Source of the DNA: Anthoceros angustus
Lineage: Eukaryota; Plantae; Anthocerotophyta
Direction of reading: 5' to 3'
Length of the DNA stretch: 64,000 nucleotides
Assembly (NCBI GenBank): GCA_010909165.1
Contig: MU008166.1
Span: 1,488,001-1,552,000, forward strand
A program made the translations under genes and the position numbers. Under the pieces are notes generated by a model, which saw only the letters and a program-made list of their open reading frames with translations, was not told where the DNA came from and ran no database searches. The first letter of the stretch is position 1, and each line of letters starts with the position of its first letter. Below are positions 8,915 to 59,805 of the stretch, one piece after another.

Positions 8915-10990
8915 TTCTGTTTTATTTATTTTTAAGTAATAAGGATAAAGATTATACAGTCTGGGGTTTAAGGTTCCCTAAGCAGTTTTTACATCACTAT
9001 CATTTAGTTCTTGTACCAGGGGGTGGGCTAGAAAACTCTCATGACAAAATCCAAACTTCTGGAGCCAAGAGGAAGACTGGGCATACCAGCAGGTCTTGTT
9101 ACCTGAAGAGGCTAATTTCCGGGAGGACTGAAAGGCAAGGAGGAGGTATGAGGGAGTGGATGTGGGGTGATTAGACTGAGCTTCTTCTAAAGAATAGAGG
9201 CGGTATAAGAAGTTGGTTAGGCAAAATAGACCCTCAAGTTCAAGCGGGAAGGTGGCAAATTCTGCAAGAAAGATGGCAAGGGGGAAGGACTTCTTACATG
9301 CAATGTGAGCTCGAAGAAAGGATGTCTGGACCTCTTCCACCTTGTACCAGTCGTCCAGCGAGAGATAGGGTCCCCAAAACGCGGCCGCATACATAACCGA
9401 AGGAACGACAACTGTGTTGAACAGCCATTGCTGAGTGGGGATGTCCTTCATGTGCATCCTAGAGCTATGTCTTCGAACCCCACACGCCCATGCCACCCCT
9501 TTGACAATGCGAGCAGAGGTAGAGAGCCGGGCCATAGAGAGTGCCACCTAGGGAGATGTAAGATGGAACAGTCTCCATATGCTGCCCATTATAGAAGAAC
9601 TTCAAGTTGTGATGAACTAGGTCCTGCCGGTTGAAAAACATGATCTTGGTCTTCTTCAAGTTCACTTCCAAATCTCTTGCCTCGCAGAAGCGGGACAATA
9701 TATTCAATTGTCGTTGGAGGCCCTCAGGAGGGTGAGACAAAAGGGCAATGTCATCTGCATACAAGAAGACAACTATGTACACCAAGGAGAGTAGGCAACC
9801 AGGATCCCCAGACTCCGCAACCCAAGACTCCAGCTCATCAATGTAGAAGCCAAATAAGTTAGGAGAAGATGGATCTCCCTGCCGCACTCCTATATTGCAA
9901 AGCAAATCCAAAAGGGCAAAGGTGGCATAGGGAGTGTGGGTCCTGACCTTCACCTTTTCATAGAGGATCCCAATAGCATGTAAACGATGAACAGGCATCC
10001 CCAACCTATGAAAGCCAGCAAAGAGCTTCTCCCGGGAGATTGAGTCAAAAGCCCGTTTGAAGTCAACAAAACAAACATAAACATGTCTATTACCCTTCCG
10101 TCTGCTTTTCGGCTCCTGAATAATAGCAATGAGGATGAAAAGATTATCCTGAGTATTCCGCTCCGGACGAAACCCAGGAGAGCCCCTTACCCCAGTGCCA
10201 CCTTTCTCGGCCCAAGAAGTAGTGAGGATCTCCAAGCAAGAGCTAAAGATCTTAGCAAATATGGACTCAACCATGACTGTAGGTGGGCGAGAGTTGAGAA
10301 TCAGCTGTCTTCAAAATGGAATGAATGTCATTCCAACACTATTCCTCAGGAAATCCATGGACTAAAACCTCATTGAACAGAGCAGTTAAGGGAGGAGCAA
10401 TAATGGTAGGAGCCGCATAAGAGAATAGCTCTCTAGGGATATCTGCAGGGTTATATGCTCTCCCAGATTTGAGGTTGTTGATGGTGGCCAGGATGAGGTC
10501 AGGAGTGAACAACTTGATCCCAGGATCCTGAGACCTAGAAGGAGGGGAAACAGATTCCTGGAAGAAAAGTGTTTGCACATAGTTGATAAGCTCAGGAGAG
10601 GCCTGCAACAGAATGGTTTGATGAGAGTGGAATTCCTTCTAAAAAGTAGCAGCACCCGGAGATTCCTTGAGGAGCCTGAAGAGGCGATCACGTTGGGAGG
10701 AAAAAAAAGCAAACTTTTTGACAGCAATGAGAGGTTTGTAAGGCTTAATAATTGCCTTGTACAACGGAGAATGATGGGACTTGGATCGCACATTGAGAGC
10801 ATAGAGGCACTTGTGGGAGTGGGATCGAAGGCGTTTGCATTCATCATCGAACCAATAGTGATGAGGGGCAGTGTTGGAGAGCTTGATAGCATGACAAGAT
10901 TTAGGGGCCCGCTTGGTCTCTGGAGAGTATCGTGCGCTAGGAGCTTTAGGTTAAAGTGCATATAGGCATTGAAGTTATTTAGGGCGTAAT
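8915..10990 (-). mobile_element. 5'-truncated, frameshifted non-LTR retrotransposon (LINE, RTE/RTEX-like RT)
   Basis: ORF pieces 10339-10608, 9465-10274 and 8978-9547 carry RT motifs GFRPERNTQDNLF, FVDFKRAFDS, GVRQGDPSSPNLF, LYADDIAL, VNLKKTKIM and the thumb region LFNTVVVPSVMYAAAFWG. A-rich 3' tail (AAAAATAAATAAAA on the minus strand) at ~8917-8935. Clade assignment is tentative. Confidence 0.9.
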
Positions 10991-13889: not shown

Positions 13890-18148
<4,259 letters not shown>

Positions 18149-18408
18149 TCTCCGACAGGACGGTCAGGGCACGGTTTTCTACTTTCCTGCAGGTCTGGCA
18201 AATTAGCATTCCACCAAAGGCAATAGGAAATACAAGTGCAAAATGTTTCAGGTTGCCCGTACAAGTGTCGAGTTCCGACAGCCTGAAGAACTGGCGCATA
18301 GAATAGCAAGTCTATCTTGAAAGCCACACACGGCGAGAGGCCTGTCTTTCTGCCGGCATTTGTACAATCGAGGCCGAGGAAAATTCGTGTTCCCCAGGGC
18401 TTCACGCC

Positions 18409-20492
18409 ATGGGCACTATTTGCAGCAGATGCCTTCCCTTCTTGCCGTTCTTCAGCCAGGAGAGCGAGGACCAGCAGCGGCCGCTGCTGAACGGGAAAAG
18501 GAGCGGCGACGGTGGCGGCGGCGGCACGGCCGCTGCGCCGCGTCATGGTGCCACATCTGGGAAGCTGGGATGGCGGAGACTCGAGTTCAAGATCCGGGGA
18601 AGGGAATTCGGCTTGGAGCTACCTGCAGGATGCACGCAGGTGGAATCCGCGGATCACAAGCTGGCCGTGTTCGAAGGCGCGGAGTTCGATCGGGAGCTGG
18701 TGGATCTGCTACGGTTTGAGAATCCGGAGCTGTGCTTTGTGCCAATCTTCCAAAACAGGCGGCTGGTGGTAGGGGACTGCATCCCGGCGGGATCCAGACC
18801 GGACAACGTTGCAAGCTTCTTCATCCCGCAGCTGGACACCGCGCAGGCGCGGTTCGGGCTGGGGCACAGATGGATGCGGTCCAGCCCGGGGACGCTGTAC
18901 GTGTATCGGGAGCGGAGGAAGCAGTTTTGCCCCGATCTCGATGTCACGGATTGCGAGGCGGCTTTGGCTGCGGACAGGGAGCTGCAGGCCGCGGGAAGCG
19001 AGGCTTTGGTGTACTATGATTTGCCGGTGCTGCTGGCGCTGGAGGTGATGGCGGAGTCGGATGATCCGGGAGACATTGATAGTAAGTGCAGAGGGATGGT
19101 GGAGGCCGGTGCTGCGCGAACTGCGGTCGGGCTCTTCGTGTGGGATCCTGCGAAGCCGCGGGAGTTCGACGGGACTGTGAAGGTGTATCAACGGCGTGAG
19201 GATTCGGATTCGAGGTTGGAATTGGGAGCGGAGGCCGGGGATCTAGATGTTGCGGTGGAGGAGTATCATCGGCCGAGATTCGTGCCGCTGGATGGCTTGC
19301 ATGAAGGCATGCGGCTCTACTTGTCTGCGCTGCCGGAGTACGCGTGGCCGTCGCAGGGACTGTCGCAGGTGAAGACTGGGGACTGGCAGATGCTCCTCAG
19401 TGCTTGCTGCGACGTCCGACATCCGGAGATGGTGAAGGAAGCCATCAACTATGTAGGATCCCTGAATTTGCAGGACAGCAACGGGAGGCTTTGCATGGTG
19501 GAGGCCGCGAAAGCTGGCGACGTGAGCCTTCTTGATTACATGCACCGGCATGGCGCATCACTCGACCGGGAAGGTAAGCACAATAGTGATGCAGCAGTTT
19601 CTTGTTCTTGGACGTGATGGTGACAGTGCTTGCATGCATTTTACGACCCGATGTCGACAGTCACCGGTGATGACATTACCTGCATGTATGTATTCATTTT
19701 TACGACCCGAGATGGTGACAGTACGGTGATGGTGTGTCTGGCAGACGCGGAGGATGTTTCTCCTTACCTGGCAGCCAGAACGCAGAACCGTGCGGAGGCT
19801 TGTAGATGGCTGGAAGAGCGGGGGTGTGTGCTCCATCCGCAGACGGCCTTGGATCAGGCGATACGAAGTCGGAAAACAAGAGTTGTGGAGTACCTCCTGC
19901 GGGCAGGGGAAACGGAGAAGTTCACTGTGAGTAAAATCTTCCTTTCTTCCCGTGCACTGAGTTGCTGTGCAGTCCCTCTTGTGGTCGCAAGGGCATTTCG
20001 ATGAATTGTTCGTGCTCAGAGTCTGCTCGAACGTTTTGATAGGCGGGAGAGCAAGGTAGCTGGAGTCCAGCGTCGCTCTCTCGACCTTTGTCGACTGCAA
20101 TGAGAGTGTGGAATGAGGACGCAGTGAAAATGCTGCTGGACAAGGGTTGCAAGCCAACGGATAACGTGTTAAACCTGAAGCTGTTGTTGAATGTGAAGGC
20201 TGATCAAGAGGCAGGCCAGACTAGCTGGAGCCCGAGATCGCTGTCGACGTGCCTGTCCACTGCCATCAAGGTATCCAACGAGGGGCTTGTCAGATCGCTA
20301 CTGGCCCAAGGGTGCAAGCCCACGCTTCAGGATCACTACCGAGCTGCCCTGTCCTCCGACCCCTCCATTGTCAACCTCCTTCTGGATGCTCATTCACTTT
20401 CCGACGACGAATTGTCCGAATTTCTCCTTGAGAAGGAGAACCTGGCCCAGGGGAGCCTCTCTCTCGTTGCTGGGGCCTCCCCTGCTGCGTGA
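18409..20492 (+). CDS. Uma2/DUF820-like (PD-(D/E)xK fold) domain fused to ankyrin-like repeats, 3 exons, 598 aa
   Basis: Exons 18409-19573, 19745-19926 and 20043-20492 join in frame via GT-AG introns. aa ~92-308 contain ENPEL, FCPDL, LALEVMAESD, IDSK, FVWDP, VKVYQR. The C-terminal half has ankyrin-like units (EAAKAGDVSLLDYMHRHGA, LDQAIRSRKTRVVEYLLRAG, LSTAIKVSNEGLVRSLLAQG). The gene model is firmer than the domain call. Confidence 0.82.
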
Positions 20493-20787
20493 ATGGTTAT
20501 TGAGACATCTCGGTCAGATCAACCCTGTTGTATGTAGCGTATGTTTTTAGTCTTCAGGATTTATTACCTGTACATAAATATCCAGTGACAAATGGTTTTG
20601 CGTGTCGAGGGGCAAGTGTAGTAGTGTGACAATTTTGGGTCATTGCCCGATACGTAGGTACCTAGTCTAATTGTGGGTAAGTAGGAGACCCTGATTACCA
20701 TCATGCACCGCAGGTTTTGTACCACAGATCTCGAATTTAGGAAACGACGGCAATAAATAAGTACCTATCAAAAAGAAAAGACAATCA

Positions 20788-23700
20788 CTAAGTATCTACT
20801 GACGTTCTACTCCCGGTACCAATGACGGCAACAGGTCGTTTCTCCACCTGCTTATGGTCGCTGTTTTCGCTCTCTGTGGCGTCGGTAGACGACGTCAGGT
20901 TAGCATCTGTGGACAGCAGCGCTCTCTCCAGATCCGTGGAGCTTCTGAAGCCATCTGCAGACTCTGTCCAGCGAAGAATGTCTGTGAAGCTCTCTCCAAG
21001 GGGAAGAGAAAAAGACGATATTGGAGTTGGTAGCTGAGACGGGACTTGTTGGATGTGGGCTTCCAAGACCCCAAGTACAACCTGCAAAGTGGGAGGTATT
21101 TTCCGTTGGTAAGCCTCTGTGCCAGTCTTGGGAAATGCATGAGGAAACCGTGTGTAGGAGGGGTTCTCAGGCAAGTACCTTCATTGATGGGCGCTCTTGT
21201 CTTTCAAACGTGGTACATTTGATGGCGATATCAGCCATGGCGAGTAAAGCGTCGTGCGAGTACTCCCCAAAGGCAGGATCTACAATCGCTTCAATGCCAC
21301 CATCCCTGAATCTGGGCCTTGCCTGCAACCAACACCTTGGATTAGTGGACTCAACTCAGCCGCCTGTCCTAGGTCCGGAAGCTGCATCCAGAGAAGTAAC
21401 TTACCCATTCAACTAGGTTGTATCCGTTCTCTCGTTCATGGTCTATGGCTTTCTGACCAGTAACGAGCTCAAGCAACACCATCCCAAAGCCATACACATC
21501 GCTGGCCGCGGTTAGCTGCCTCTGCAAGAAGTACTGCGGATCCAGATATCTGCAATAGCCACCAAAGACTGTGAGCCACAAGTAGCAGGTGTTTGAGGAC
21601 CAGATTAGGGATGGGCTGTACTGCTTACCCAGCCGTACCAGCTGGCCTGGTGGAGATGTGAGTGTCAATCTCTTTGCTCACTCTTGAGATGCCAAAATCA
21701 GATAGCTTTGCGTTGAACTTGTCATCAAGTAAGATGTTGCTGGGTTTCACGTCCCTATGGATGACAGGAGGATCCTGCGGAAGAAGCCAAGCAGGAAGCA
21801 AATCGGGATCTTGATGTAGGATACTAATCAAGATTCGTGGAGGTGAGAATATGGTACCGCATACGAGTGGAGATACTCCAGGCCTTGAGCAACGCCGACT
21901 GCTATCTCCAGCCTCTTGTACCAGTGCAAGGGTTTTGCCAGTCTCGTCCCTGTGACGAAGAAGCCAGTCAGGACGAGGGATGACACCACACATACATGTC
22001 GGAAATGTAGAAAGGATGATTAATCTCACCAAATAGAAGCGAGAACAGGTTCCCGTTCTTCACAAACTCGTACACAAGTATCTGGAGTTGGTCGAGGGTA
22101 CCACGTTAGGGGGAAAATGGTGCAAATAGGAGAACTAAACAGGTTCCCACGATACCTACTTGCAAGCCTAGATCATCACAGAAGCCCTCCAGACGAACAA
22201 GATGCCGGTGATGTAGCCGGCTGAGAAGAGCAATTTCGTTGTGGAACTCGTGAAGCCCTTGCATACTCGTTGTGGAGGCTCTCTTTATTGCTACCAGCTT
22301 GCCGTTTGGAAAGGCACCGAGGAACACCTTGCCGAAACCCCCAACTCCAATTTCGTTCTTTGCGTCGAAGTTGTTGGTGGCCTTTGAAAGCTCTTGGAAG
22401 GTGTATCTGTGGACACCTTGAGGGATTTCCCACAGTTGCTCGGATTCTGTCACATGTTGCAGTGTAAGACCAACTTTGCCACTCGTAATCAGAATTCATG
22501 CGAAAACTGCAATGGAATACATGGGAGCTTACCTCCACCAGGATTAGTGCTTCCTCTTGTCGGCTTTGTAGAGAAAACATCCACGAACGTACCTCCTTCC
22601 GTACGGTTTCGCCACAGAAAGAAACCGATTGCCAGGCCTAGGACAACTATTACGGCTAAAGCAGCACCCAGCACTGGAGCAGCAGGGAAACTTGATGACG
22701 ATTTTGATGATGCTGCTGGCGAGGATACTTCTGCAATGGCAAACCCACCAGTGTTAAATCACACAGCTTCTGCTCTTCACCTCACGATTGAAAAAGAAGT
22801 AGTGGATGCAACTGTGTACATACCCAGAGGGCTGCAAGTACAGTTGGCATTTGCCACAAGCACCGCAATCGAAGGGGGACATGGGGCACAAGTCCCTGAA
22901 AGCCCGTGCAAGTGAACCATAAGGATGCAGCAGATCCGCACCATGGACCAACGGCATCAAGGACAACAGCTGACCCAAAAGGACTACTGTAATGGAGCGA
23001 ACTTCAACCTGGTGGATAGTTTTTCAGGAATGCAGCGCACGCAAGGTTTCTTTGACAAGTTCGGCCCGAGTTATCAGCATTGTTGTCGGTGATGTTTGTG
23101 AAACAGTTCCCATCCACACTGCTGGTCCATAATAAAGGATATGAGCTATACGTTAAACTGGAATCATAGCTGGTCAACAGCTAGACAAAGTTTGGAGAGA
23201 CTATAGAATGCAGCCATTTCAACAGAGAAAGCCAACATAAGTGCAGACCCCTCTTGAGTTAAGGGCGAAAGACTTTACATATCCAATGAAGCATTTGGGT
23301 AAGGACCAAAGAAGTAATTGCATTGAAGATCTCTGCAACCAACAAGAAACACGAACCATCAACCATCGTGATTTTCGGGGACACGAGCAGGATCACAACA
23401 CTGAGGTCTACCAGAACAAGTGAAACTTGAGTCTTGAGTTACAATGAAAGCTTGAGAGAGCAGGACTTACAGTCTTGCAAAATGTCCAGCGCCCACCAAG
23501 GAGGGAAAAAACCCTTGAAACTGATTTTGCTCCAGCCTCCTATAACCCAAGAGGTAGAACAAAATTGAATCAGAACACTGGCGGCTTTGCTTTGCTCTCA
23601 GACAGACTGTTGGCAATTAACTTACAGTTCTGTTAAATTTGGTTGCAGTAAGAGCCATGAAGGAACAAGTCCTGAGAGATAGTTCTTTTGCAGGGACCTG

Positions 23701-25486
23701 GGCAGCCAAACAGACGAAATCAGCTCTAATGTAGACGAACATGCAATCAAATCCTTCTGCCAAAAAGACTTGAATGGGAGAAGTTGAAGGTTTCATACAG
23801 TTGCTTCAAGCTGGTCATATCTTGCCATTGGTCAGGGATGAATCCAGTGAGCTGATTGTCATAGAGCAGCCTGTCCAGAAAATGCACCAATTTCACTATG
23901 ATCAACAGAGTCTCCACTTCAAATGTTAATTACAGAACCACGTATGTGCCAGCAGCATACAATCTTTGCAGATTCTTCAGTTGCCCAAAGGTAGCAGGGA
24001 GACCACCCCATACTCCAGTGTCATGTATATTCCTGCATAAATCATGGAGAGAAAGCAAACTTGATGTCAATACAGTCGAGGCACTTGTCAGTAAGAATTG
24101 ACCCTTCATACAATTGACTCTCTATACTTGCTACCTCGGTGACTGTTTCCCTCACATGTACGTAAGTTGAGACAGGTTCCCCAGGTTAGCAGGTAGAGAT
24201 GAATCGAATGGGATATAAGATAAACTCCTGTAGCCACAAGTGTTTTGCCAGATCAGTACAGAGTAGCCTGTAATGCGTGCTAGCTGCTTTCTTGTAGAGT
24301 TTGAAAGAGGAGATATTGACGACAGCTACTGGTCGTTTGCTGGTTTTGAGTGCATACAAACTTGACAGATCCTGCAATGTTCCAATCGCTAAAGGAATTG
24401 CCCCTCGGAAGCTGTTGTTGCTCAACCACCTGGAGTAAACTGTTTACCGTGAGAACAAGAGCAATGACCACACAAAGTAAGTGAACAGCAGTACAGCTGA
24501 TCTTACAACGTCTGAAGCTTTGAAAGTTGTCCAAGCTCTTCAGGCAAAGTCCCACTCAAATTTGCATTCCCCATGTTTCTGCAAGCACACCGTCCGTGAA
24601 TGCTACTATCCAACACCGCACCAGCTACGCATGAAATGCTACTATCCAACACCGCACCAGCTACGCATGACATCAAATGAGTAAGGTGCGTACAGAGTTA
24701 TAAGGTTCGGTAGTTTCAGCACGACCGCCGGGAATGGGATATTCAGCTCCAAGTAATTAAGGTTTCTGCATAAAGAAACATCGTTTCAGAGTAATGCAGA
24801 CCAGTACAGGGCTGTCAACCGGAGCAGCTGACAGCAAGGAAATGAACTGCTGGGTGGAACAGAACTCCAAACACAGCAACAAAAGGGAACAAGGACAGAA
24901 GGGAGAACATACAAAGTTTGCAAAGACTGCAAGTTGCTCAGCTCTTCAGGTAGATTGCCAGTGATAGTATTCCAGGGCCCAACAGCTGTGAAGTTCACAA
25001 GATTATTGCTTATGTCTAGACTGGTAAGGTACGTGAGCTGGCCGATCGCACTTGGTATTCCTCCACTCAGACCATTATTAGTGAGATTTCTGCAAACCAA
25101 AAGCATTTCATCCATTCAATTCCGAGAACCAAGTGCCCCGCTCAGTGACTACCAGGAGAGCAAACCGTCAAGAAAGACGAGCTTACATTCCGGAGACATG
25201 ACCATCTACACAACTCACACCATGCCACTGCCCTTGGCAAGGGTCTTCCGCAGAGATCCAAGACTGGAAGTTTACCCCCCAGCTTCGCATCAGCTGAATG
25301 AGGATATTTCCTGCGGCACAAAGAAACATCCAGTCAGGAAGATAAGAAAGCGAGGCCCCAGGGCCTTCACTCGGGGAAGGCGCCCAGCGGTACCCACCTT
25401 CTTCCACTGTCGCGGTACACACAGACGCTGAAGCTGCGAGGAGACAGAAAATTGAAACCAAAATGGCGCACTGCCCTGCTTGCCAT
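20788..25486 (-). CDS. LRR receptor-like Ser/Thr kinase (RLK3); start codon 1 nt out of frame with the signal peptide
   Basis: [22 protein letters not shown]; about 10 LRR exons; GNCF..C..C and CAPCPP..CTC segments; [23 protein letters not shown]. Kinase motifs [37 protein letters not shown]; stop at 20788. The nearest ATG (25486) is 25 nt upstream of the signal-peptide frame. Confidence 0.9.
24599..24670. repeat. 36-bp tandem duplication in an RLK3 intron
   Basis: AATGCTACTATCCAACACCGCACCAGCTACGCATGA occurs twice in tandem. Confidence 0.9.
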
Positions 25487-43299: not shown

Positions 43300-45345
43300 A
43301 CTCATTTATTTATTTATAGATCATTAGGCGTATGCAACCGTGAGGCTATGACACCTGAACAGGAATTAAGAACATGAATGAAGTGACATTTGGGAGAGCG
43401 TAAACGCAAAGAAAGTAGATCAAACAAAGATCAGAAGACTAAATAGCTTTGCTAAGGAACCTACACCAAAAGTAGTCGCCAATCAGCTTGAAGTAAGAGA
43501 TAAGTTTCCCTCTGAGTTTGGAAATACAGAGGAGTTGGCGCATATCATAGTAAGAGCCCTGAAAAATCCGGTCCCACTTGTTGCGGGTAGCCGAGCACTG
43601 ACCAAGGATGTGCTGGTGGGTTTCTTCGGAAGACATACATTTCCGACAAAATGGGTTTCCAGCGATGTTGAATCATCTGAAATAAGCCCCAATAGCCATA
43701 TGCCCAGTCCGTAACTGGGTGAAAAAGGATGAGACCTTACGATCATGAAGGCCAAGACGTTGTAACACCAACGCCGAGGGGCCACCAAGCACCACTCGCT
43801 TTAGCACAGAAGCTTTAGTAGATGAAGCCCACTGTACATGCCACTCCTGCAAACTTGCCACATGAATCTGTTGACGCGCTCTGGACATAGATAAGGTACA
43901 ATCTTCACTGGAAATTGGAAGAAGAGTGGCTGCCTTAGCAGTTTCATCTGCCAGCACATTGCCGACTACATTATTATGGCCCGGAATCCAATGGAGGTTT
44001 AGGGAAACTTGAGGGTGAGCAAGAGAAAGGGCATGGAGAGTGGCCCGAGCCCGTATTGAGATAGCCTGGGAGGAGCGCGCAAATGTGTCAGTTAAAGACA
44101 AGATAGCTGCTTGGTTATCAATGAATATGTTAACTGAGCGAACCCCAGAGAGTGTGGCTAAAAGAACAGGTAGGTACGAGATGGCCTTAACCACAGAAAG
44201 AAGTTCTGCCTCAAAAATCCCATAGTAAGTCTCTAAACCAAAAGACAATTGATGCACATGATCCCTGTTGAAATAGAAAACTGCCGCCCCTCCAACTTTA
44301 CCATCCATGAGGGAACCATCAGTGTAAATTGCAAGAGTATTAGGAGCAAGTAGATACTGAGAATGTGAGGCAATGGCTAACTCAGGAGATGGTAAAATCA
44401 CAGCGGTTGAGAGTAAAGACAGGGGGGGGGAGCCCAAGGGGGAACAAGGCGAGGGAAAATGGTCTCAATGACAATAGGGGTGGGCAACTGTGACACCAAG
44501 TAGAGAGGAGCTTGGGAAAGGAGGGTGAGTCGGCTACGGTTAGATTTGTAATACCATTTTTTGTGGTAAGAGGCCGGTAGAAAGGCTTGGTGCATTGGTT
44601 GGGAAGGAGGGCAAGAGAGGTTACGGAGAAGAGGGTGGAGAGAATGGCGTTGAAGACGGATCTCAATGGGCAGAAGGAAAGCTTCAAATTCAAGGGCCTC
44701 AGTGAAAGTGGTTCGAAGCGCGCCAATAATTGCCTTACAAGTTAGACATTGAACCCGTTGAAGATGTTGAATATGCGTGCGCCCGCCATTAAACCAAACA
44801 CCGCAGCCCTAATGGAGTTTAGGCAAAAGAACGGTAACATATAGTTGTCGCAGGAGGTTAGCTTTGAGTCCCCAAACAAAGGTACCAAGAGAGATAATAG
44901 CTGATAGAGTGCGCATAGCTGAAGCCCGAAGCCTGTTGCACATGGGTGTTCCAAGTTGACTTGGAGTCTAAGTAAAAGCCCAAGAATTTAACACACTCTG
45001 AGGGAGTAATAAGGAGCCATCGGGCAGAGAAAGAGTATACTCCTTAATATTTTCATTGCGCTTGAGAGAAAAATGAATGAGCTCGAACTTGTTGAGATTA
45101 AAGTCCGCGAGGTGCGTAGAGGCCCACTCTGAAGCTACATGTAGCATAGCTTGAAGCTTTTTTGTGGATTTCTAGTACGAAGGAGCAGTGGCATGTGCCC
45201 CAGTGTCATCAATCCAACCAGTGTTGCTGCCCATAGATTGAAGTTGAGAGATAAGGACAAAGGTGAAGAAATGTAGCAACTATCTGCATAGAGTGTAACT
45301 TGCAGAGGATGTTCTTGACGGAAACTAGCATCAGACACATGGATG
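43300..45345 (-). mobile_element. 5'-truncated Tad1/I-group-like LINE with RT C-terminus, RNase H and CCHC knuckle
   Basis: GWIDD and VKFLGFYLDSK..WNTHV (RT/thumb); IETIFP..PPW; RNase H motifs IYTDGS, FEAEL, FIDNQAA, LHWIPGH, GNVLADETAK; QLRTGH; after a TGA, FCRKCMSSEETHQHILGQC. Possible (TAAA)n tail at ~43302-43315. Confidence 0.88.
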
Positions 45346-57949: not shown

Positions 57950-59461
57950 CTACTCAAAAACAACTGCAGCGGGTCCCTTCTTTGACCCGCCGTTTCCAGC
58001 TTTCTCATCATCGTTATCTCGGAACCGCTTGTGCGAATTCCTCTTCCCTTGGTACCCGTTATCTTGCCGATCATCCTTGCCGTGAAACCCCCCTCTGAAT
58101 CCACCTCGCCCACCTCTGTACCCAGAATGGTGGCCACCCCTGCCTCCACGCCCTCTGTGGTCCCCTCTGCCTGCGAAATTCCGCCTTCTAAGTTGCCCTT
58201 CCCTGAGCTTCTTCCAATACTCCTTCTCCGCGTCTCCATCAACAGACTCCACTGTCATCAAGAAGCCCTTCAGTACTAGGCCACCCTCCTCTGCTATGAT
58301 AGCCGCTGTCCTAGCTTTCTGCGCTTCTTCGGGGCTCTCAAACCTGACAAACCCAGAAGTCGCGCCCCTAGTAAAATCGACGAATCTGACAACGCCGAAC
58401 TGCTCCATGGAAGCCTTGATGTCCTCGCGTGCCAAGCCGTTATCGCCGCTGCTTTTATCTCCCTCCTCCGACTTACTTGCAGCAGGAGCACCTTCCGCTG
58501 CACTGTCGGAGGAAACTCCCTCCGGCTTGCTTGCAGTAGGGGTACCTTCCGCTGCACTGCCGGAAGCATCACCTTCCTCCTCAACTGCAGCAGGAGCAGC
58601 GGCCTCCGATGCAATATCAGACCCTACGTCCTCCGCCTTGCTCGCATCAGGAGCGCTTTTGACTGCATCTCCCTCCGCCGGAACCTCTGCTGCATTTGCA
58701 TCACCGCTCTCCTGCGTCTCCGGATTTTCCTTATCTATCTCGGACAGATAGAAGGCGACAATAAGTCCCTGAGGATAAAACATCTCGCCTTCAGCCTCCG
58801 CTCTCTCCCGCTCCAACTTGGCCTCCTGCTCCAACCTCGCATCCCGCTCTGCATACAGCTTCTTCATCCGCTCATCGAACGCCACCTTCGGCTCCACCTC
58901 CAACTCCACACCAATTTCCTCATACAAAGGCGTCGACCCGATCAACTTCTTCGCCTCCTCCTCCGTCGCAAACTCGATCAACGCCGAGCCACAAAACACC
59001 TTCGCAACCGGGCTCCGCGGCAACCTAACACTATTCACCTTCCCAAACGCAGCAAAGAAAGACTCCACCATCTCCAAGGTGGTGTCATAGGGCAAGGGCC
59101 CGGCAGCCACAGTCCTGGCATCAACCTCCGCCTGCACAACCTCCGGCCTCTCCAAATTCTCCAGCCTTCCCACTCTCAATCCATCCTCCGACAAACGCAA
59201 CAAGGCCGACTTCCTCAGAACCTCGGCAACTCCCTGCGTGATGTCCCCAGTCACAGCCTCCAGTCCATGCTCCTTCAGACCTAAATGACTCCGCATTCTG
59301 GAGAAAGAGCACACCACCTGGAGACTGACCAGTCCATCGTCGCTCGTCTCAATGGACTTCAACAAAAACTTGTCCCGGGGAAGATTGCTGTCGCTGAAGT
59401 AGAACTCCACCTGCCTCAGGATCTTGGCCGCCGTGTCCTCGCTGAAGTCCAGAGGTGCCAT
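57950..59461 (-). CDS. La1: La/SSB RNA-binding protein (La motif, RRM1, RRM2), intronless CDS, 503 aa
   Basis: KILRQVEFYFSDSNLPRDKFL (La motif), VNSVRLPR..FCGSALIEF (RRM1), VRFVDFTRGATSGFVRFE..EGDAEKEYW (RRM2), RGG-rich tail. First ATG is at 59461. Confidence 0.96.
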   Translation of the reverse strand: MAPLDFSEDTAAKILRQVEFYFSDSNLPRDKFLLKSIETSDDGLVSLQVVCSFSRMRSHLGLKEHGLEAVTGDITQGVAEVLRKSALLRLSEDGLRVGRLENLERPEVVQAEVDARTVAAGPLPYDTTLEMVESFFAAFGKVNSVRLPRSPVAKVFCGSALIEFATEEEAKKLIGSTPLYEEIGVELEVEPKVAFDERMKKLYAERDARLEQEAKLERERAEAEGEMFYPQGLIVAFYLSEIDKENPETQESGDANAAEVPAEGDAVKSAPDASKAEDVGSDIASEAAAPAAVEEEGDASGSAAEGTPTASKPEGVSSDSAAEGAPAASKSEEGDKSSGDNGLAREDIKASMEQFGVVRFVDFTRGATSGFVRFESPEEAQKARTAAIIAEEGGLVLKGFLMTVESVDGDAEKEYWKKLREGQLRRRNFAGRGDHRGRGGRGGHHSGYRGGRGGFRGGFHGKDDRQDNGYQGKRNSHKRFRDNDDEKAGNGGSKKGPAAVVFE

Positions 59462-59805
59462 CTCCACGCCACAGAAATTCCAGAATCCTTTCACGCTCTC
59501 CTTCTCCAAAATTGATGTGATCCAGTCGTGAATTCCGCTTGACACTCGACCGCTCTGGCCTGCCAACAGCAGCTCAGAGCATCCCGAGCCCTAGCAGCTT
59601 GACCTAATCCGATGACCGCTCAACGGTCACCGGAATAAACGGTGCCCGGTGGTAGGGAAGCGCTCACATGCAAATCTCAAATAGCGTGCATACATACATA
59701 TATGGAAGCTTCCATGCAGCACGAGATATCTGCCCACAGTATTTCATTGTTGTCCGGTTTTTACGATGAGGAGCCCCGCCTATTCTTGGCGGCCTGAGCG
59801 GGGCC

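Follow-up and report, generated by a model that had tools for sequence, protein, structure and literature searches.

A lineage-restricted hornwort gene that probably joins an acylation motif and a very diverged Uma2-like domain to ankyrin repeats

We analyzed a 64,000-nucleotide (nt) stretch of the hornwort Anthoceros angustus (GenBank assembly GCA_010909165.1, contig MU008166.1, positions 1,488,001 to 1,552,000 of the forward strand), here called the window; all positions below are counted from its first letter. A three-exon gene lies at 18409-20492 on the plus strand, and its joined coding sequence of 1797 nt encodes 598 amino acids (aa) with no internal stop codon. We consider it fairly likely that this is a constrained, lineage-restricted plant gene whose product carries an acylation motif, a glycine-rich linker, a very diverged Uma2-like domain, and ankyrin repeats; a membrane-tethered mechanism is proposed for it with low confidence. 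An earlier note on the same DNA had described a horizontally acquired, cyanobacterial-type Uma2 domain fused to ankyrin repeats.

Structure, expression, and constraint of the gene

Exon 1 (18409-19573, plus strand, 1165 nt) encodes aa 1-388 and the first base of codon 389. Its initial ATG at 18409 opens a 402-aa open reading frame (ORF) on the plus strand, and the exon holds the acylation motif, the glycine-rich linker, the putative Uma2-like domain, and the first ankyrin repeats. Intron 1 (19574-19744, 171 nt, phase 1) and intron 2 (19927-20042, 116 nt, phase 0), on the same strand, are both of the GT..AG type. The donor after 19573 reads GGGAAG/gtaagc and the acceptor before 19745 reads ...ctggcag/ACGCGG; for the second intron, the donor after 19926 reads TTCACT/gtgagt and the acceptor before 20043 reads ...ttgatag/GCGGGA. 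Exon 2 (19745-19926, plus strand) encodes ankyrin repeats, with weak Pfam Ank_2 and Ank_3 matches, and is present in RNA contigs. Exon 3 (20043-20492, plus strand), placed by its Pfam Ank match and its translation, encodes ankyrin repeats and the C terminus and ends with a TGA stop codon at 20490-20492. Both introns fall within the ankyrin part, as the earlier note had read them.

Public sequencing runs were compared with window positions 18200-20700; these comprised RNA from two relatives, X1 and X4, as well as RNA (X21) and DNA (X22) from the source organism. One RNA contig from X1 (6050 nt, word depth 39.5) and one from X4 (2771 nt, word depth 96.1) were colinear with the window at about 94% identity, with mismatches at 84 of 1372, 11 of 184, and 51 of 610 nt. 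Both contigs were colinear over 18200-19571 (+2) and then jumped to 19743 (+2), and both contained the joints 19573/19745 (171 nt skipped) and 19926/20043 (116 nt skipped). A spliced transcript that links exon 1 with the ankyrin-coding exons, whose absence would have refuted the earlier note, is therefore present in both relatives, and the exon and intron boundaries, the uninterrupted reading frame, and the two joints together bear out the 598-aa spliced gene that had been claimed. A second X4 RNA contig, of lower depth, has the corresponding joint and comes from a diverged copy. The gene is genuine, spliced, and expressed in sister species.

Constraint on the protein was assessed from the differences to X1, for which 31 coding differences were listed, a subset of about 245 differences. 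These were 20 synonymous and 11 nonsynonymous changes, including 10 synonymous and 3 nonsynonymous changes within aa 85-315. The listed insertions and deletions measured 6, 3, and 6 nt in the coding sequence, all multiples of three, and 1-2 nt in the leader. Because of the synonymous excess and the coding indels in multiples of three, we regard this as a maintained protein-coding gene; the listed changes point to a ratio of nonsynonymous to synonymous substitution rates well below 1 and thus to purifying selection.

In the source organism DNA run, numerous contigs share 85-95% identity with the gene, which is therefore a member of a small family. One such contig, at 18486-18576, skipped 89 nt and had 28 other letters in their place, and the relatives were without 6 nt at 18511, in the region of the glycine-rich linker. 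The length of this linker is variable among copies. The gene is lineage restricted and selectively constrained, and it is a plant gene.

The encoded protein starts with MGTICSRC (18409-18432, plus strand), an N-myristoylation-type motif read from the sequence, which with Gly2 and Ser6 fits the PROSITE consensus G-{EDRKHPFYW}-x(2)-[STAGCN]-{P}. Cys5 and Cys8 are candidate palmitoylation sites. In the relative, the sole listed change to this motif is I4V, and Gly2, Cys5, and Ser6 are unchanged. At the other end of the protein, a Pfam Ank (PF00023) match in exon 3 (E value of 5.2e-5, 23.8 bits) exceeded the curated cut-off of 21.1, and weaker Ank_2, Ank_3, and Ank_5 matches occurred in each of the three exons. 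A Protein Data Bank (PDB) search returned designed and generic ankyrin proteins only, including DARPin chains (E value of 3.7e-11) and KIDINS220 (E value of 2.5e-5). The ankyrin repeats of the earlier note are supported by these matches, and the C-terminal part appears to consist of about six to eight of them.

The Uma2-like domain and its possible activity

Between the linker and the ankyrin repeats lies the stretch assigned to a diverged Uma2-like domain with a predicted PD-(D/E)xK (restriction endonuclease) fold (aa 85-315; 18661-19353, plus strand), based on language-model neighbors, hhalign, and MAFFT. We ran an ESM-Atlas language-model feature search with aa 60-320 and then with aa 85-315, the latter limited to named clusters. 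The clusters nearest to aa 60-320 were eukaryotic "restriction endonuclease domain-containing" proteins of Oomycota and Mucoromycota (scores of 0.91-0.93, 170-177 shared features), followed by bacterial Uma2; over both searches, the top scores of 0.91-0.93 came with 163-177 shared features. With aa 85-315, the 100 named clusters closest to the query included 95 from the PF05685 (Uma2) set. When the PF05685 clusters were removed, the best score dropped to 0.80 and then to 0.69, and the remaining clusters were mainly DUF4058 (72 of 100). HSDR_N and PDDEXK_3 made up some of the others; all three are PD-(D/E)xK-type families.

For a profile comparison, two Nostoc plasmids were inspected for reference sequences, and the initial 50 kb of neither held an annotated Uma2 gene. 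Bacterial genomes were scanned with a degenerate DNA pattern that encodes P-D-[LF]-x-V-E-V-L-S-P, giving 92 ORFs, all 92 of which matched PF05685 and were aligned (alignment A1). When aa 56-322 were compared with A1 by hhalign, a core of aa 204-265 (19018-19203, plus strand), including E212, K226, and D246-P247, aligned with profile columns 107-159 (probability of 32%, P value of 4.9e-4, score of 28.5-28.8), which hold the Uma2 block PDLvVEVLSP..D..K..Y..GV.E.W.VDP..TV.VY. None of 600 shuffled sequences reached the real score of 28.5 (mean, 13.4; standard deviation [SD], 2.6; maximum, 25.5), and neither did any of 464 length-matched segments of unrelated natural ORFs (mean, 12.9; maximum, 23.2), placing the score about 6 SD above 1064 control sequences. 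The N-terminal half alone was collinear with Uma2 but matched it weakly, with a score of 15.5 and a P value of about 0.07. In a single-sequence AlphaFold2 prediction, aa 95-104 formed a helix and aa 108-123 a hairpin, with predicted local distance difference test (pLDDT) values of 60-83, and aa 56-125 alone were moderately confident; the modeled helix and hairpin would suit the start of the Uma2 consensus.

Because two largely independent methods single out Uma2, and because the profile score lies beyond all 1064 controls, we favor a Uma2-like reading of this domain. The similarity over the predicted catalytic core (beta3-alpha2-beta4-beta5) appears weak but specific at the profile level, and as the best available reading, aa ~90-310 probably form a very diverged Uma2-like PD-(D/E)xK domain. 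The motifs that the earlier note had listed in order (L101.F103.N105PEL108, P175-D176, E212, K226, G241..FVWDP247, VKVYQR at 257-262, and G300.RLYLS306) are all found in the translation, each at the residues it had given.

A membrane location is proposed because MGTICSRC fits the N-myristoylation consensus and has cysteines nearby. Each step of the following mechanism is put forward with low confidence. The protein would be tethered to the cytoplasmic (inner) face of the membrane by myristoyl and palmitoyl groups, and the ankyrin repeats could recruit partner proteins, for which the flanking kinases described below are the obvious candidates. The nuclease-fold head might be a metal-dependent nuclease that is held in check at the membrane. 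Alternatively, it might serve as a noncatalytic binding module following the loss of several family-invariant residues. We rate a restrained nuclease and a catalytically dead binding surface about equally.

The residues that would perform catalysis can be traced in part. In a MAFFT alignment with the query added (A2), G122, P175-D176, E212-V213, K226, G234, and D246-P247 fell in near-invariant Uma2 columns, an invariance that is partly by construction, as the reference set was selected by motif and is biased to PD[LF]xVEVLSP. Other near-invariant residues are replaced: a His (P131/N133), the second Pro-Asp (V207-L208), a Ser-Pro (A215-E216), and a Trp (F243). The Glu of the Uma2 ELI motif falls in an alignment gap. 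The first Pro-Asp of Uma2 was paired with P175-D176 by MAFFT and with S159-P160-G161 by hhalign, and because these registers differ, the identity of the catalytic Asp is alignment dependent. Thus, the earlier claim that the candidate catalytic D, E, and K are all retained holds in the MAFFT register (D176, E212, and K226), but hhalign places Gly161 at the Pro-Asp aspartate.

These replacements bear directly on the strongest alternative, a pseudo-enzyme in which a Uma2-like fold has lost catalysis and provides a binding or decoy surface on a membrane-tethered ankyrin scaffold. The substituted His, second Pro-Asp, and Ser-Pro favor it, as does Gly161 in the N-terminal register of hhalign, and a lipid-anchored protein would be poorly placed to cut nuclear DNA. 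However, D176, E212, and K226 line up with the three conserved columns under MAFFT and are spared by the listed differences from the relative, and purifying selection is compatible with either an active or a dead head. We take loss of catalysis as a serious possibility, while leaning slightly against it. As for the opposite outcome, it seems decidedly unlikely that the gene belongs to a tethered family of the hornwort lineage with a still active Uma2/Crinkler-type head on its ankyrin scaffold, acting as an executor or guardee in immunity or symbiont control with the adjacent leucine-rich repeat (LRR) kinases.

Several results weigh against the tethered gene with a Uma2-like domain, most of them concerning the domain. 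For aa 1-320, hmmscan against Pfam (E values up to 10) and a search of NCBIfam returned neither Uma2 nor any other family. Pfam sets a gathering threshold of 27 bits for Uma2, and by it the domain does not qualify as a formal member of PF05685. A hidden Markov model built from A1 scored 0.7 bits with hmmsearch, a score equaled by 40 of 2000 shuffles. The sequence matched 17 of 38 conserved Uma2 columns, compared with 12.7 ± 2.4 for shuffles; because 13 of 300 shuffles also reached 17 (P of about 0.04), the collinear motif list is only marginally beyond chance and is unconvincing by itself. The replaced near-invariant residues and the motif-based selection of the reference set count on the same side. 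So does the RNA run of the source organism, in which no contig covered the gene.

Structure prediction added little independent weight. Apart from its N-terminal elements, the single-sequence AlphaFold2 model of the domain was unusable for the most part, with an overall pLDDT of 41. A model guided by A2 (pLDDT of 70, predicted template modeling score of 0.68) had a beta-alpha-beta-beta core and, in Foldseek, matched TT1808 (1WDJ), 9Y1L, 6OKH, and DUF820 (3OT2) with template modeling (TM) scores by target of 0.59-0.72, as well as Uma2-type clusters in the AlphaFold database and the ESM Atlas. We dropped this model as evidence for the fold, as its alignment consists of Uma2 proteins and the result is circular.

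When aa 60-320 were searched exhaustively with phmmer, 1.84 billion representatives yielded six matches, all to long bacterial He_PIG/Big_9 proteins with immunoglobulin (Ig) repeats. We rejected these as spurious, since their totals combine as many as 23 weak matches to aa ~207-260, each of which was at chance level. Over this stretch (19018-19190, aa 207-260) the repeat-summed phmmer E values went down to 7e-29; whole-sequence E values mislead on repeat proteins. That unrelated Ig repeats match here at all shows of how little worth a 50-residue match can be, a further point against the Uma2 assignment. Word-indexed protein searches with the whole exon 1, with aa 62-322, and with aa 85-315 (at an E value of 10) came back blank, as did a metagenome scan and tblastn of plasmids. 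The word-indexed searches thus yielded no orthologue or paralogue for a family alignment. The domain is an orphan at the level of ordinary sequence searching.

Taken to their conclusion, these results would suggest that the N-terminal domain is unrelated to Uma2, being lineage specific with another or a new fold, and that the Uma2 signals are a coincidence on a short stretch. In favor are the blank Pfam, NCBIfam, and phmmer searches, the marginal HMMER and motif-count controls (P of 0.02-0.04), an hhalign probability of just 32% over 53 columns, the chance Ig-repeat matches on the same stretch, and the pLDDT of 41 for the single-sequence model, the one structure prediction that is independent of Uma2. 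In addition, calibration of the ESM-Atlas search showed that shuffled proteins score 0.9 in 4-10% of cases. We nevertheless consider an unrelated fold unlikely. The same family was picked out of thousands by two largely independent methods, the language-model signal was specific, with 95 of 100 neighbors and a collapse to 0.80 without Uma2, and the hhalign score stood about 6 SD above its controls. Moreover, both AlphaFold runs predicted a helix over aa 220-232, which is ill suited to an Ig fold. The Uma2 assignment thus stands on the hhalign and language-model results, whereas the HMMER-type searches suggested by the earlier note gave no Uma2 match with Pfam, NCBIfam, or phmmer.

Origin of the domain and genomic neighborhood

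Exon 1 is, as previously claimed, intronless over its 1165 nt and GC rich, at 61.7% GC compared with 51% for the window. We rejected this as a sign of foreign origin, since GC at third codon positions (GC3) is also high in the parts of exon 1 outside the domain. GC3 is 0.74 for exon 1 as a whole, 0.74 for the N terminus outside the Uma2-like part, 0.75 for the domain, 0.71 for that portion of exon 1 which encodes ankyrin repeats, and 0.60-0.66 for exons 2 and 3. The values form a 5'-to-3' gradient across the gene and therefore no foreign island.

No bacterial homologue was found by exhaustive phmmer, the word-indexed searches, Pfam, NCBIfam, tblastn of plasmids, or the metagenome scan. The nearest language-model neighbors are eukaryotic clusters from Mucoromycota, Oomycota, and Ascomycota. 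A recent transfer would leave clear sequence identity, and because none is detectable, a recent transfer from a Nostoc partner is effectively excluded. Because the domain has diverged beyond HMMER detection, we suggest with moderate confidence that this lineage has had it for a long time and did not take it up recently from a cyanobacterial partner.

That a cyanobacterial Uma2 gene, possibly from a Nostoc partner, entered the plant and was then fused to ankyrin repeats is very unlikely indeed: Uma2 is recorded as bacterial with a genomic context well conserved in cyanobacteria (PMC3424549), exon 1 is intronless and GC rich, and the structure-only ESM-Atlas match falls on a Uma2 cluster rich in cyanobacteria; against this, that match comes from the circular model, similarity to bacterial proteins is undetectable, the closest neighbors are eukaryotic, GC3 is as high around the domain as within it, and the main text of the hornwort genome paper, including its section on horizontal gene transfer, mentions neither endonuclease nor ankyrin (PMC7027989). 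The cyanobacterial-type, horizontally acquired origin in the earlier note is thus not upheld, and the account of transfer from cyanobiont to host is corrected in that there is no evidence for transfer.

The gene lies where the earlier note had placed it, among LRR receptor-like kinase genes, one of which was found on each side. The upstream gene (14510-18148, plus strand) has LRR_4 and Pkinase matches, with LRRs at 14510-15019 and kinase pieces at 16367-17633. The downstream gene (20788-25115, minus strand) has Pkinase and LRR matches, with kinase pieces at 22453-21369 and LRRs at 25115-24786. The kinase domains of the two genes contain the arms of an inverted repeat (17022-17100 and 21855-21933, 84% complementary). 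The two kinases are diverged paralogues arranged tail to tail around the three-exon gene, which occupies almost the whole gap between their 3' ends.

Both kinase genes are covered by contigs from source organism RNA (X21). The upstream kinase contig ends at 18397, 12 nt 5' of the ATG, and the downstream kinase contig reaches 20567, 75 nt past the stop codon; at these points the transcripts of the adjoining kinases reach their 3' ends. In the relatives, the contig bearing the three-exon gene extends 715-775 nt upstream of 18200. The contig ends in the source organism and in the relatives would fit either overlapping untranslated regions or read-through from the kinase gene.

Elsewhere in the window, ORFs with RVT_1 and RNase H matches at 9465-10274 and 43673-44437, both on the minus strand, are retroelement remnants. 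A single 538-aa ORF at 57950-59566 (minus strand) has La, RRM_1, and RRM_3/xRRM matches, marking a gene for a La or LARP7-type protein that is apparently intronless over that stretch.

Comparison with known systems

Steczkiewicz et al. (2012, PMC3424549) list Uma2/DUF820 among bacterial families and class its members as predicted endonucleases, and a literature search found no functional study of Uma2. The plant domain resembles the bacterial Uma2/DUF820/TT1808 proteins (PF05685; 1WDJ, 3OT2, 6OKH, and 9Y1L) in the motif order PD...E-V...K...G...[FW]xxDP...TVxVY, and in both the K follows the E by 14 residues and the G follows the K by 8. Unlike those proteins, it falls below every HMMER and Pfam threshold, carries insertions of 4-11 residues, is about 40 residues longer, and is without the conserved His, second Pro-Asp, and Ser-Pro. 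Bacterial Uma2 proteins are typically stand-alone and about 190 aa long, whereas the plant domain is part of a spliced eukaryotic gene that also encodes an acylation motif and ankyrin repeats. If the fold assignment is true, a Uma2-like nuclease-fold domain is present in a land plant in this fused form; our literature search found no description of a plant Uma2 member or of a Uma2-ankyrin fusion.

The nearest neighbors by language-model features are the eukaryotic Uma2-like clusters of Mucoromycota, Oomycota, and Ascomycota (190-306 aa), with scores of 0.92-0.93 and 170-177 shared features. As with the plant domain, these clusters mostly escape the Pfam Uma2 model, which matches 23% of one cluster. 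In contrast to the plant gene, no ankyrin fusion has been reported for them. Crinkler-type restriction endonuclease (REase) toxin domains were reportedly described by Zhang et al. in 2016 and might be linked to the Uma2-like clusters. The hornwort gene would, if the assignment is true, be a further case of prokaryote- or toxin-type enzymatic domains being recruited into plant signaling or immune proteins.

A PD-(D/E)xK family native to plants already exists in DUF506 (PF04720), which is plant specific (Steczkiewicz et al. 2012, PMC3424549). The hornwort protein shares with it a plant setting for this fold, but has no Pfam DUF506 match, and no DUF506 cluster was among the language-model neighbors. 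Across very large protein collections, our searches detected no homologue of the gene family described here, and the relatives with transcript data make the gene experimentally testable.

For the ankyrin part, the closest parallels are XB3/XBAT and ACD6, plant ankyrin signaling proteins that act alongside receptor kinases or have a role in immunity. If the reading with an active, tethered head were true, the hornwort protein would represent a plant immune architecture without a described counterpart. XB3/XBAT and ACD6 differ from it in carrying RING or transmembrane domains and in having no nuclease-fold head; the likeness lies in the ankyrin protein-binding module, which in the hornwort is encoded by a gene lying between two receptor-kinase genes.

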